Source of the DNA: Sminthopsis crassicaudata
Taxonomy: Eukaryota
Direction of reading: 5' to 3'
NCBI RefSeq assembly: GCF_048593235.1
Contig: NC_133617.1
Span: 627,668,958-627,732,957, forward strand
DNA length: 64,000 nucleotides
This document shows positions 48,290 to 62,662 of the stretch, piece by piece (positions within the stretch are counted from its first letter, which is position 1; each line of letters opens with the position of its first letter). The notes beneath the pieces were generated by a model. That model had not been told where the DNA came from, did no database searches, and saw only the letters and a program-made list of their open reading frames with translations. The position numbers were made by a program, and so were the translations under genes.

Positions 48290-49000
48290 CTGGAGTACCT
48301 CCGAGAACCACACTTGTCAGCACCCTTCTCCTCCGCCCGCACCGGGGACCTTCCTTTTATGCTAGTGGCGCCCTAGCACCGCAGCCAATCAGCGGACGCG
48401 GCCTTTCTCTATTTCCCGATACGACGCACCACTTTAATGCGTGGCTCCGCCCCCTTTTGGGAAGAATTGCGCATGCGCAACGTGCTTCCTTGGGCGTTCC
48501 GGATGGCTGTTTTCCGCTTCTCAGCTTGTGGCTGGGGCGAAGACGACGACAGCAGATTGGGGGTGGGTACGGCGGGAAAGCTTCCGCGGCGCGAGTCGGC
48601 GCCGTTACGGGCCGGGGTAGCCGAGTGGGCGTGCGAGGTCTCGCGTGGAGGAGCTTCCCCATGTCTCCGCCCCCACAGCCTCTATCTCGGATCGGAGCGG
48701 GGGCGGGCCCCTCGCCCCCTCCCCGCCTGCCGGGCTGTGCTGTGGCCCAAGTCCAAGTTGAAGGGCAGCAGTCGAAGGAAGCAGGCCTCAGTTAGGGGAG
48801 GTGTGTGCGGGGCTCCCAGCCTCAGTCTCCCGACATGGAGTGGACTCTGTGGTTCTGGCTTGGGGGAGCTGGTGAGTTGGAGGAGGACTGCCTGCCCTGG
48901 AAGCCCTCGGGGTTTGCCGGGGGTGGGGGCTGGGGGGGCAGTGCTGGTGTAGCGGAGGGAAAAGGCGGCAGTTCTGTTCCGCAGCTCCTCACCCGGCCGG
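48290..49000. promoter_or_regulatory. CpG island promoter of the Ig-domain gene
   Basis: CCAAT box AGCCAATCAG (48383-48392), GC box CTCCGCCCC (48445-48453), perfect NRF1 site TGCGCATGCGCA (48468-48479). Confidence 0.8.
48835..48871 (+). CDS. Putative leader exon (MEWTLWFWLGGA)
   Basis: GACATGG Kozak context, short hydrophobic peptide, strong phase-1 donor G|GTGAGT. The signal peptide is short, so the assignment is tentative. Confidence 0.6.
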
Positions 49001-60100: not shown

Positions 60101-62662
60101 AGGTTTGGGGAGGGATGTATAAATGTAAAGACAGGAGAAAGGCATTTAGTAGGTCACTGGTAGAGGAATGGAACATAACTGGGAAAATAGGTAAGCTTGA
60201 AAAATGTATAGGAAAGTGAATGAACTTTAAGGAAAATATGACTGTAGTGGGATAAACTGGGAGGGGTGACATTATGGGAAGAAAAAGGAAAGGATGGAAG
60301 AGAAAGGAGGAAGGAAATCCTTTAGATGTTGGGGAGATGAAAAAAAAATTCCTGTAAGGGAGAAAGTTTTGGGCAAATCTTGTGGAATCTTTGGTCCCTG
60401 TGAATGATGAAAAGAAAAGAATGGGGGAAGAGCCTAAAAGTGAAGGAAACATATCCTAAAATTAAGGAAAACTGAGTTGTGTGTAGGTATGAAGCTCATA
60501 TCTTTCAGGGATTTGAAGGGCAGAAAAGTCAGATGTATGGGCAAGTCCTGTGTTAGAACTGATTTATAGTAAAATTAAAGGAAGATAGACTTTATATGGG
60601 GGAGCAAAAGGTAAAGAAACTGACTCATCTCTCCCTTTCTTCTTCCATTGTTTAGAAAAGTGGTGGGAAGATGTTCAGAGCAACAATAGGCCATCAATTA
60701 TTAGCAGCATCCTGATCACCACCTTGGGTATTACTGTTATAGGTTTTGCCATCATCCACAGCTTGAGAAGGAACAGAGGTGATTGGGGAGTAAGGAGAAT
60801 GGGGAGTTATGAAATATAAGAGAAGGGAGATGGGAGGAATGCAACAGGGAGAATTGAATAACCTGGAAAGGGAAAAAGATGGGGGTGAAAAAAGAAGAGG
60901 CAATCCAGAAGGTGTGGAATTTTTGAAAGTTAAGAGGAAAATGGGAAGCTCTTTCCTCTTTAGAGCAAAATTTCCTCATTTGAGAAGCCTTATATATTAC
61001 CCAGGCCTAGAAGAAGAAGAGCAGGAGCAGGGAGAAGTCCGGACAGCAACAGATGAAGAGGACAGGGAGCAACCTCAAGAAACATCTGACTTCCAGTCTC
61101 CTGGAAGAAACTGGGAGGTGGAGAAATTATTACCAAGGGATCATACTGAGTCTGAGGGAGAGATCCTTCAGGGAGACAGAAAAACTGGATTCCTACAGGG
61201 CTATAGAAAGACTGTCGGGTTGATGGAAGTGAGGTATTCAAGGATCAAGAGACAAATCATTGTAGAATGTAGAGAGACTGAGGATAAGATCCTTGCATTA
61301 GAAGGTACTAGGGAGGGTCAGATCTTAGTAGAAAAAGGTGAAAGTAAAGGGCAGAACCTAGAAGGATATGTAGAGAGTGAGGGACGAGTTCTGGAAGAAT
61401 TTGAAGTGGATACTGAGCTACAGTTTCAGGAGGCTAAAGAAATAAAATCTGAAGGGCAGATCATAAAAGGCAATAGAGAGATAGAGGTTCACAAGAGAGA
61501 TAAAGAAGCCACTGAAAAACAGAATGGTGAAGGACATACTGAGAAAAGGGATGCTGAAAGACAGACCCAAAGAGGAAGGGATAATGGACTGACCCAGGGA
61601 GGGGATAGAGAAGGACTGCCCCAGGGAGGGGATAGAGAGGGACTGACCCAGGGAGGGGAGAGAGAGGGACTGACCCAGGGAGGGGAGAGTGAGGGACTGA
61701 CCCAGGGAGGGGAGAGTGAGGGACTGACCCAGAGAGGGGATAGTGAGGGACAGATTCAAGGAGGGGATAGTGAAGGACTGACCCAGGGAGGGGATAGTGA
61801 GGGACTGACCCAGAGAGGGGATAGTGAAGGACTGCCCCATGGAGGGGATAGAGAGGGACTGACTCAGGGAGGGGAGAGTGAGGGACTGACCCAGGGAGGG
61901 GATAGAGAAGGACTGACCCAGGGAGGGGATAGTGAGGGACTGACCCAGGGAGGGGATAGTGAGGGACTGACCCAGGGAGGGGATAGTGAGAGACTGACCC
62001 AGGGAGGGGAGAGAGAGGGACTGACCCAGGGAGGGGATAGAGAAGGACTGACCCAGGGAGGGGATAGTGAGGGACTGACCCAGGGAGGGGATAGTGAGGG
62101 ACTGACCCAGGGAGGGGAGAGAGAGGGACTGACCCAGGGAGGGGATAGTGAAGGACAAATTCAAGGAGGGGATAGTGAAGGACTGCCCCAGGGAGGGGAT
62201 AGAGAGGGACTGACCCAGGGAGGGGAGAGTGAGGGACTGACCCAGGGAGGGGATAGTGAAGGACTGACCCAGAGAAGGGATAGTGAGGGACTGACCCAGA
62301 GAAGGGATAGTGAGGGACTGACCCAGGGAGAGGATAGTGAAGGACAGATCCAGGGAGGGAATTCCAAAGAAGAAATCTCCAGAAGGGATGCTAAAGTGCA
62401 AGTCCACCTAGGGGATGAGGAAGCCATTAAAGGACTTGGCTTTAAAGAAGTTGGAAGAAATGAAACAAGACGAATAGCAGGGGAAGGAGAGGCCATGGAA
62501 CAAATCCCAAGTGGATATGAAGGGATTGAGGGCTGGATATCAAGTGGGAAGATTGATAATCAATCATTGAGGATAGATGAGGATCTTTCAGAACAGTCCC
62601 CAGGGGCAATTGGAGACAGAGTTCTTCCCAAAGACGAAGACATCATCCAACTCCAGGGATAG
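48835..62662 (+). CDS. Uncharacterised type I Ig-superfamily receptor: leader-V-V-C1-TM-long acidic repeat tail, about 947 aa if one frameshift is corrected
   Basis: Exons 48835-48871, 49256-49585, 58722-59107, 59496-59804, 60656-60778, 61005-62662. All junctions are GT-AG and phase 1, as expected for IgSF domain exons. Confidence 0.8.
49256..49585 (+). CDS. IgV domain 1 exon
   Basis: LLQC...VFW...GNASLLLHRVAMADLGSYYC: canonical B-strand Cys, C-strand Trp and D-x-G-x-Y-x-C; 330 nt, phase 1/1. Confidence 0.92.
51380..53170 (+). mobile_element. Degenerate L2-like and other old LINE fragments
   Basis: Purine-rich L2 3'-type text (GGAGCCACTGAAG, TAAGATGCTTACTCAACAT, CATTAAGCACCTGCTATGTACCAG). 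Confidence 0.45.
54950..55817 (+). repeat. About 142-bp direct repeat (54950-55093 and 55676-55817)
   Basis: The copies differ by 7 transitions and one 2-nt indel; the first copy interrupts an older SINE (54888-55166). Confidence 0.9.
55434..55587 (-). mobile_element. WSINE1-like SINE
   Basis: T tail, full consensus, near-TSD CCGTAAGGTTCT / CCCTAAGGTTCT. Confidence 0.88.
57122..57165. repeat. (TTTC)n plus T run
   Basis: Directly visible. Confidence 0.9.
58722..59107 (+). CDS. IgV domain 2 exon, with a 12-Glu insert and a 1-nt frameshift
   Basis: ALLKC...IRWY in one frame and GNASLTILRAQPKDAGLYSC in the next. The exon is 386 nt, whereas phase 1/1 requires 387. Confidence 0.88.
59496..59804 (+). 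CDS. IgC1 domain exon
   Basis: LLCQIKGFYP...WWLRNG...TQNPDGTFDL...FTCHVTHPALEHP is a classic C1-set signature; 309 nt, phase 1/1. Confidence 0.95.
60656..60778 (+). CDS. Transmembrane exon
   Basis: EKWWEDVQSNNRPS-IISSILITTLGITVIGFAII-HSLRRNR: 20-aa uncharged TM followed by a basic stop-transfer stretch; 123 nt, phase 1/1. Not reported in the supplied ORF track. Confidence 0.85.
61005..62662 (+). CDS. Cytoplasmic-tail exon (about 552 aa, acidic, repeat-containing)
   Basis: Acceptor TATTACCCAG|GC in the phase needed to join the TM exon to the long open frame 60809-62662. Confidence 0.7.
61586..62368 (+). repeat. Coding 27-bp tandem repeat, 29 units (consensus GLTQGGDSE)
   Basis: Unit GGACTGACCCAGGGAGGGGATAGTGAG; 783 nt = 29 x 27, with no indels. 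Confidence 0.97.

Follow-up and report, generated by a model that had tools for sequence, protein, structure and literature searches.

The stretch of DNA analyzed here (the window) comprises 64,000 nucleotides (nt) of the genome of the fat-tailed dunnart, Sminthopsis crassicaudata (RefSeq assembly GCF_048593235.1, contig NC_133617.1, positions 627,668,958 to 627,732,957 of the forward strand). Between EIF3C and ATXN2L lies a gene for a predicted B7-like membrane protein, which corresponds to RefSeq LOC141565028 (the tail exon is 100% identical). The gene is real, conserved, and unpublished, and it is already annotated as a RefSeq LOC model; none of the marsupial or echidna LOC identifiers is named in any paper of the literature searched. 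A first-pass annotation, made from the sequence alone, had described it as an immunoreceptor gene with six phase-1 exons encoding a leader, two variable (V) domains (here V1 and V2), a C1-set constant domain, a transmembrane segment, and an acidic tail. The six exons do exist on the plus strand of the window, all with GT-AG borders and in phase 1, but they do not join into a single open reading frame (ORF), as the V2 exon is frameshifted and runs into a stop at 58952. Exons 1 and 2 had been placed correctly, whereas the borders of exons 3 to 6 were off by a few bases. The features of the gene are as follows (lengths of proteins are in amino acids, aa; tandem repeats were found with Tandem Repeats Finder, TRF; exons 1, 5, and 6 were read by translation):

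48300-48900, no strand: CpG island at the 5' end of the gene (GC 0.65, observed/expected 0.79)
48835-48871, plus strand: exon 1, split leader with ATG (MEWTLWFWLGGA), ending in phase 1
49256-49585, plus strand: exon 2, V1, V domain of the B7/TAPBPR type containing GNASLLL...DLGSYYC (Pfam V-set, E 1.9e-10)
58722-59107, plus strand: exon 3, V2, frameshifted in the assembly (C-terminal half against V-set, 5e-5)
58887-58924, plus strand: (GAG)n microsatellite, translated as poly-Glu within the V2 C'-D loop (TRF, period 3, 12.7 copies)
59496-59804, plus strand: exon 4, C1-set domain, LLCQIKGFYP...W...NPDGTF...FTCHVTH (Pfam C1-set, E 2.2e-13)
60656-60778, plus strand: exon 5, stalk and uncharged transmembrane helix (SIISSILITTLGITVIGFAIIHSL), followed by an RRNR stop-transfer sequence
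61005-62662, plus strand: exon 6, acidic cytoplasmic tail, 552 aa
61586-62359, plus strand: coding 27-nt tandem repeat (GGDSEGLTQ), 28.7 copies (TRF)

These exons specify a type I membrane protein with a V domain of the B7 type, a true C1 domain, and an uncharged transmembrane segment. The reading of exons 2 and 4 as V-set and C1-set, the uncharged transmembrane segment with a tail of ~550 aa, and the gene's own CpG island were borne out. Within the island, a CCAAT box (~48386), an NRF1-type GCGCATGCGC (~48471), and GC boxes were read directly. The short exons are well conserved: exon 1 is identical in Antechinus and 92% identical in opossum (Monodelphis) over its 37 nt, and exon 5 is 95% and 88% identical, respectively. 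V1 and V2 are separated by an intron of 9.1 kb.

The assignment of exon 4 to the C1-set deserves some detail. Its score against the Pfam model PF07654 is 50.8 bits (cut-off 21), and it scores more weakly on the C2-set models (C2-set_2, which is CD80-like, E 4.8e-6; C2-set_3, E 7.1e-6). The C1-set hallmarks are present as LLCQIKGFYP (GFYP), AWWLRNG (the strand-C Trp), and FTCHVTH (CxVxH), and they are invariant among the marsupials compared. The best matches in the PDB are the C1 domains of immunoglobulin mu, UrIg2, IgA, SIRP (alpha and gamma), and the beta chain of class II of the major histocompatibility complex (MHC). UrIg2 is an elasmobranch VJ-C1 gene (PMC12227049); it was considered as a specific relative and rejected, as the exon 4 match is only generic C1 similarity.

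Purifying selection acts on both V1 and C1. Among dunnart, Antechinus, and opossum, the ratio of nonsynonymous to synonymous substitution rates (dN/dS) is 0.05-0.25 for V1 and 0.12-0.37 for C1. The lower values are those between dunnart and Antechinus (0.05 and 0.12), whose differences in these two domains are almost only synonymous.

The tail exon consists of a conserved proximal part of ~170 aa, the array of 9-aa repeats, and a conserved distal block. Alignment reveals wide variation among marsupials in the number of repeat copies. The exon has no Pfam match, and its start has no upstream in-frame ATG. Two deletions affect the dunnart tail: a 1-nt deletion at ~62620/62621, which leaves the last ~13 residues unlike those of Antechinus and opossum, and an 18-nt deletion in exon 6 that removes the ancestral stop. 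Two ideas about the tail were tried and rejected, namely that it is an APOBR-like acidic repeat (BLASTP against the window's own APOBR exon gave E 1.2) and that YSRI and YEGI are signaling motifs resembling immunoreceptor tyrosine-based inhibitory motifs (ITIMs), as these are not conserved in opossum or echidna.

The V2 exon and its skipping

The V2 exon is 386 nt long (386 mod 3 = 2) because a single T is missing, and this length keeps the six exons from joining in one ORF. The T is lacking at 58926/58927, where the dunnart sequence is GAA GAG AA-GAT GTG and that of Antechinus is GAA GAG AAT GAT GTG. This position directly follows the (GAG)n microsatellite on its 3' side; in the dunnart, the microsatellite is six codons longer than in Antechinus. 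As a result, V2 is divided over two frames, the first (58724-58926) continuing through the poly-Glu run to TAA at 58952-58954, and the second (58927-59106) containing the second half of the domain (GNASL...YSC; GNASLTILRAQPKDAGLYSCSV). V2 is intact in the proteins of Antechinus, Trichosurus, Notamacropus, koala (Phascolarctos), and echidna. Only five counted coding sites differ between the V2 exons of dunnart and Antechinus, so either the lesion arose recently or the assembly is in error at this site.

In opossum, V2 has separately lost 1 nt from a run of G, giving GGG GGC TAA with an in-frame stop. The pseudo-exon is at 19749-20092 of the Monodelphis locus sequence and is skipped in both the NCBI and the Ensembl models; dN/dS for V2 is raised in comparisons with opossum (0.59-0.79). 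Because the lesions of dunnart and opossum are at different sites, V2 has been disabled at least twice, independently. All junctions of the gene are phase 1, and skipping of V2 therefore leaves leader, V1, C1, transmembrane segment, and tail in frame. This is what the RefSeq models of LOC141565028 depict: V2 is skipped in both isoforms, X1 (818 aa, V1-C1-transmembrane-tail) and X2.

At the 3' end of V2 there are two in-phase GTGAGG donors, 39 nt apart (59068/59069 and 59107/59108). The upstream donor is used by RefSeq X2 isoforms in three species, and its use would delete the G strand of V2. The X1 isoforms of four marsupials use the downstream donor, and the G strand is thus kept. The 13 codons between the two donors are identical in dunnart, Antechinus, and koala.

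Orthologues, relatives, and the rest of the window

We found orthologues in six other marsupials (Antechinus, Trichosurus, Notamacropus, Phascolarctos, Monodelphis, and Petaurus, the last as a tail only). The order EIF3C-gene-ATXN2L, which the first-pass annotation had proposed as a check, is the same in Monodelphis and Antechinus. Outside the marsupials, an echidna protein (LOC119941841) with the layout V1-V2-C1-transmembrane and an acidic, EGQ-rich tail matches at E 3.9e-122 (HMMER), and the gene downstream of it matches the first ATXN2L exon of opossum. It is the only nonmarsupial match at the level of an orthologue that aligns as one stretch over ectodomain and tail; a multi-domain array of lungfish also falls below 1e-100, but through 13 separate stretches. 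RefSeq models of several marsupials and of echidna join V1 with V2-C1, in agreement with the initial proposal that these belong to one unit.

Eutherian proteins were sought exhaustively with HMMER among 1.84 billion representative proteins and with a word-indexed search of 5.8 billion proteins, and neither search returned one at orthologue level, as had been predicted. The best eutherian match in the word-indexed search was hamster HHLA2 (E 2e-16). Because orthologues are present in echidna and marsupials, with none detected in eutherians, retention followed by loss in placentals is favored over a marsupial-specific gene; of the two origins first offered, “marsupial-retained” is thus the better supported, and the core of the first interpretation is upheld. 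Monotremes and marsupials have kept the gene; in eutherians it was apparently lost.

Profiles of the two V domains identify the kind of protein to which they belong. The first PDB matches are CD276, PD-L1, PD-L2, and VTCN1, with values for the V2-type and V1-type profiles, respectively, of 2e-25 and 6e-23 for CD276, 3e-17 and 2e-8 for PD-L1, and 4e-9 and 8e-9 for TAPBPR; human B7-H6 is absent from the top 60 PDB matches of either profile. The look-alikes by ESM features and structure are TAPBPR, NCR3LG1-like, and CD276 clusters. Together, these matches confirm V domains of the B7/TAPBPR type. Modeled with AlphaFold2, the Antechinus ectodomain reaches a mean predicted local distance difference test score (pLDDT) of 81, with the poly-Glu loop disordered (pLDDT < 50). 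In Foldseek searches with this model, the top matches were CD276 (first in both PDB and Swiss-Prot) and BTNL2; whole-model matches below these are mostly generic multi-immunoglobulin proteins and do not discriminate.

Among the matches for which names were obtained, the top ones came from turtles, alligators, frogs, bichir, coelacanth, and lungfish, and their RefSeq labels vary (NCR3LG1-like, tapasin-related-like or TAPBPL-like, SIRP-like). The nearest nonmammalian relatives are V-C1 genes without a name of their own, found in turtles, crocodilians, frogs, and basal fishes. In turtles, V1-type-C1-transmembrane genes are separate from V2-type-C1-C1-transmembrane genes. Both types are found 0.39-0.93 Mb from the start of chromosome records of 134-157 Mb (in three species), which suggests a subtelomeric cluster. 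In the domain trees, mammalian V1 groups with the turtle V1-type genes (support 92/89), mammalian V2 falls within the sauropsid V2-type clade (97/91, starred), and mammalian C1 groups with the C1 of sauropsid V2-type genes (84/86); TAPBPL-type, koala NCR3LG1, HHLA2, and CD276-like domains are outside the clade. As V1 and V2-C1 come from two amniote V-C1 lineages that are separate genes in turtles, the mammalian gene would be a product of fusion or exon capture, in which the V1 exon probably joined a V2-C1-transmembrane gene before monotremes and therians split.

The remainder of the window contains neighboring genes and a few other features:

6077-10949, minus strand: putative APOBR, whose main exon is a 1244-aa ORF at 6545-10276 with DSLSTFASYFLGDTVPS
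13000-14000: third CpG island, between APOBR and EIF3C (GC 0.61, observed/expected 0.72)
18416-18606: run of 191 N (gap or masked)
28300-29300, plus strand: CpG island at the start of EIF3C (GC 0.60, observed/expected 0.78), with an ORF at 28619-28888

The minus-strand gene at 6077-10949 is putatively APOBR, by its likeness to the human protein. Its putative ends are an N-terminal exon with MDLLRLHFP at ~10425-10949 and a C-terminal piece, PRSRVLLSRNASQRRSRPSFRR, at 6077-6409. The island at 13000-14000 would be the CLN3 promoter by the gene order given in the first-pass annotation. More EIF3C-like exon ORFs follow the start of EIF3C, up to ~42900.

Divergent from the CpG island of the B7-like gene, an ORF at 48031-48219 on the minus strand encodes 62 aa that include one hydrophobic helix (MSYTTWSHKAGPITLYFLFFFLLLFLFFCGWYIY). 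The frame is also open in Antechinus, at 93.5% aa identity, and in opossum, where identity is 63% over 54 aa; dN/dS is 0.15-0.47. No homologue was found in protein databases, and the only Pfam match is below threshold. The ORF may be an unannotated microprotein with a bidirectional promoter, in which case the two genes may share the CpG island, or it may be conserved promoter-flanking DNA.

Proposed explanation and alternatives

The explanation that we favor, with a probability of roughly 0.7, is that LOC141565028 is the dunnart copy of an unpublished gene for a B7-superfamily type I glycoprotein that dates back at least to the ancestor of living mammals and was apparently lost in eutherians. 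The ancestral protein would have had a split leader, V1, V2, a C1-set domain, an uncharged transmembrane segment, and, as its tail, a long acidic disordered part that carries a variable-number tandem repeat of 9 aa. In the dunnart, V2 would have been disabled by the 1-nt deletion, and skipping would yield the in-frame 818-aa product; the opossum would have arrived at the same state through its independent frameshift. The membrane-distal V1 may then bind a conserved host counter-receptor in trans, as V domains of the B7 family do, with C1 as a membrane-proximal spacer and V2 dispensable. Because there is no charged transmembrane residue and no conserved ITIM or immunoreceptor tyrosine-based activation motif (ITAM), the protein would be a cell-surface ligand rather than a signaling receptor. 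For the same reasons, the original label “immunoreceptor” is at most putative, as the protein looks more like a ligand. The CpG-island promoter would give broad expression, as for B7-H3 (CD276), whose promoter is typically a CpG island, and the acidic tail, in which the number of repeats varies, would act as a disordered scaffold.

A number of points weigh against this explanation. The search for the gene in eutherians covered protein databases only, and names were obtained for 20 of the 150 top representatives in the family search. EIF3C and ATXN2L were not found within 10 kb of the turtle loci, and the support for the placement of mammalian C1 is moderate. Splicing of the exons into one transcript is predicted from gene models and the logic of phase. 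Both the binding of a counter-receptor by V1 and the role as ligand are drawn from resemblance to the family. Lastly, the dunnart lesions (two 1-nt deletions and one of 18 nt) could represent early decay or errors of the assembly.

If they represent decay, the dunnart copy may be a nonfunctional, young unitary pseudogene, even with the gene working in other marsupials. In favor of this are three lesions that Antechinus and opossum do not have (the V2 deletion with its premature stop, the C-terminal 1-nt deletion, and the 18-nt stop loss), yet the frames of leader, V1, C1, transmembrane segment, and tail exon (552 aa) remain open, and V1 and C1 have changed almost only synonymously relative to Antechinus. 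Moreover, skipping of V2 keeps the frame, the opossum is in the same state with the rest of its gene conserved, and RefSeq treats the dunnart locus as protein-coding. We therefore regard decay as unlikely. Alternatively, the exons could belong to several transcription units, with V1 alone, V2-C1-transmembrane as another, and/or the tail as its own gene. The closest relatives of V1 and V2-C1 do differ and are separate genes in turtles, and an intron of 9.1 kb is between them; in addition, an Antechinus isoform lacks V1, the Petaurus model is only a tail, and a newer koala model stops after the transmembrane exon by read-through. However, V1 by itself lacks both a transmembrane segment and a stop, all junctions are in phase 1, the start of the tail exon is not preceded by an in-frame ATG, and leader, V1, V2 (where retained), C1, transmembrane segment, and tail are joined in the RefSeq models of Sminthopsis, Antechinus, Trichosurus, Notamacropus, Monodelphis, and echidna, and in the earlier koala models. 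Separate units are thus very improbable.

The remaining alternative concerns function rather than integrity, in that the protein could be a TAPBPR/tapasin-like accessory (chaperone or editor) of MHC class I instead of a B7-like surface ligand. The V1-type profile spans the TAPBPR V domain end to end (at the E of 8e-9 given above), tapasin-related proteins head both the ESM feature clusters and the structural look-alikes (score 0.95; TM 0.57, residues 17-357), bona fide TAPBPL-type proteins of frog, gull, and tuatara match the family profile at 1e-30 to 1e-36, and the C1-set domain is common to the gene and TAPBPR/tapasin. On the other hand, CD276 and PD-L1 score far above TAPBPR, TAPBPL-type V and C domains are outside the clade in both trees, a tapasin-type N-terminal domain is missing, and the long, acidic tail is at odds with the short one of TAPBPR and tapasin. 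Taking these together, we consider an accessory role improbable, although better placed than separate units.

The finding adds a conserved, uncharacterized B7-like gene to the short list of immune-type genes, TCR mu and the UT class I family among them, that monotremes and marsupials have kept and placentals lack. The strong constraint on V1 implies a conserved partner. The two independent losses of V2 would be an instance of ongoing domain loss through exon death, and through its V1 and V2 lineages the mammalian gene is linked to a V-C1 family, so far without a name and inconsistently labeled, that is present in reptiles, amphibians, and basal fishes. For work on the dunnart and other marsupial models, the gene offers a candidate immune or adhesion ligand. 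It is tempting to go further and to see in it the ligand half of a costimulatory or natural killer (NK)-type axis of early mammals that placentals discarded whole; marsupials and monotremes would then own an immune checkpoint without placental counterpart. Separately, V1-V2-C1 may be an ancestral layout, still preserved here, that gave rise to the N-V-C1 of tapasin and TAPBPR. We hold these ideas, taken together, to be unlikely. The partner in such an axis could be an orphan single-V receptor of those reported as missing in human, for example CD28HL1. Such orphan receptors are described in a survey of the CD28 family (PMC11599192). The discussion of that survey gives CD28HL1 as “missing only in eutherians,” whereas its results state that it was not found in mammals. 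CD28HL1 as the partner is a lead, not evidence.

Comparison with known immune proteins

In sequence, the gene has a B7-type distal V domain, a constant immunoglobulin domain, a single transmembrane segment, and one domain per phase-1 exon. On this basis, it is assigned to the B7 superfamily, as a member of the V-C1 (B7-H6/TAPBPR-like) kind and the orthologue of no named member. With CD276 and PD-L1 it shares the GNASL...DxGxYxC pattern of the V domain, the one-domain-per-exon arrangement in phase 1, and the type I transmembrane topology. It differs from them in having a true C1-set domain (E 2e-13) instead of a CD80-like C2-set (E 5e-6), in its V-V-C1 arrangement (theirs is V-C or V-C-V-C), in its acidic repeat tail of 550 aa, and in its locus.

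SIRP is the name that RefSeq gives to several of the orthologues, and there is a likeness in that a C1-set domain follows a V domain, with the C1 of SIRP alpha and gamma among the PDB matches of exon 4. Unlike SIRP, the gene encodes a single C1, with no conserved ITIM or tyrosine motif and no basic transmembrane residue, and its V domains match B7 members instead.

TAPBPL (TAPBPR) and tapasin have in common with the gene the pair of V and C1-set domains and the V pattern EIPKGNASLLLRNV...GxYxC, and they are its nearest clusters by language-model features and predicted structure. They differ in their N-terminal domain of ~170 aa, which has no equivalent here, where the leader exon splices directly to V1; in three TAPBPL-type proteins, the V domain is at about residues 173-447, behind a long N domain. 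The long acidic tail is a further difference, as is the position of TAPBPL-type domains as outgroups in both trees.

NCR3LG1 (B7-H6) and the “NCR3LG1-like” genes of turtles and frogs resemble the gene in arrangement, with a B7-like V domain followed by a C1-set domain, a transmembrane segment, and a long tail. The koala has an NCR3LG1 of its own, which is only 25% identical (E 3e-22), forms a long, unresolved branch outside the clade, and is probably on another chromosome (in a record of different size). Because this gene is separate, and because B7-H6 is not in the top 60 matches, the gene described here is a relative of B7-H6 and not B7-H6 itself. Its V2-C1 part nests among the “NCR3LG1-like” genes of sauropsids.

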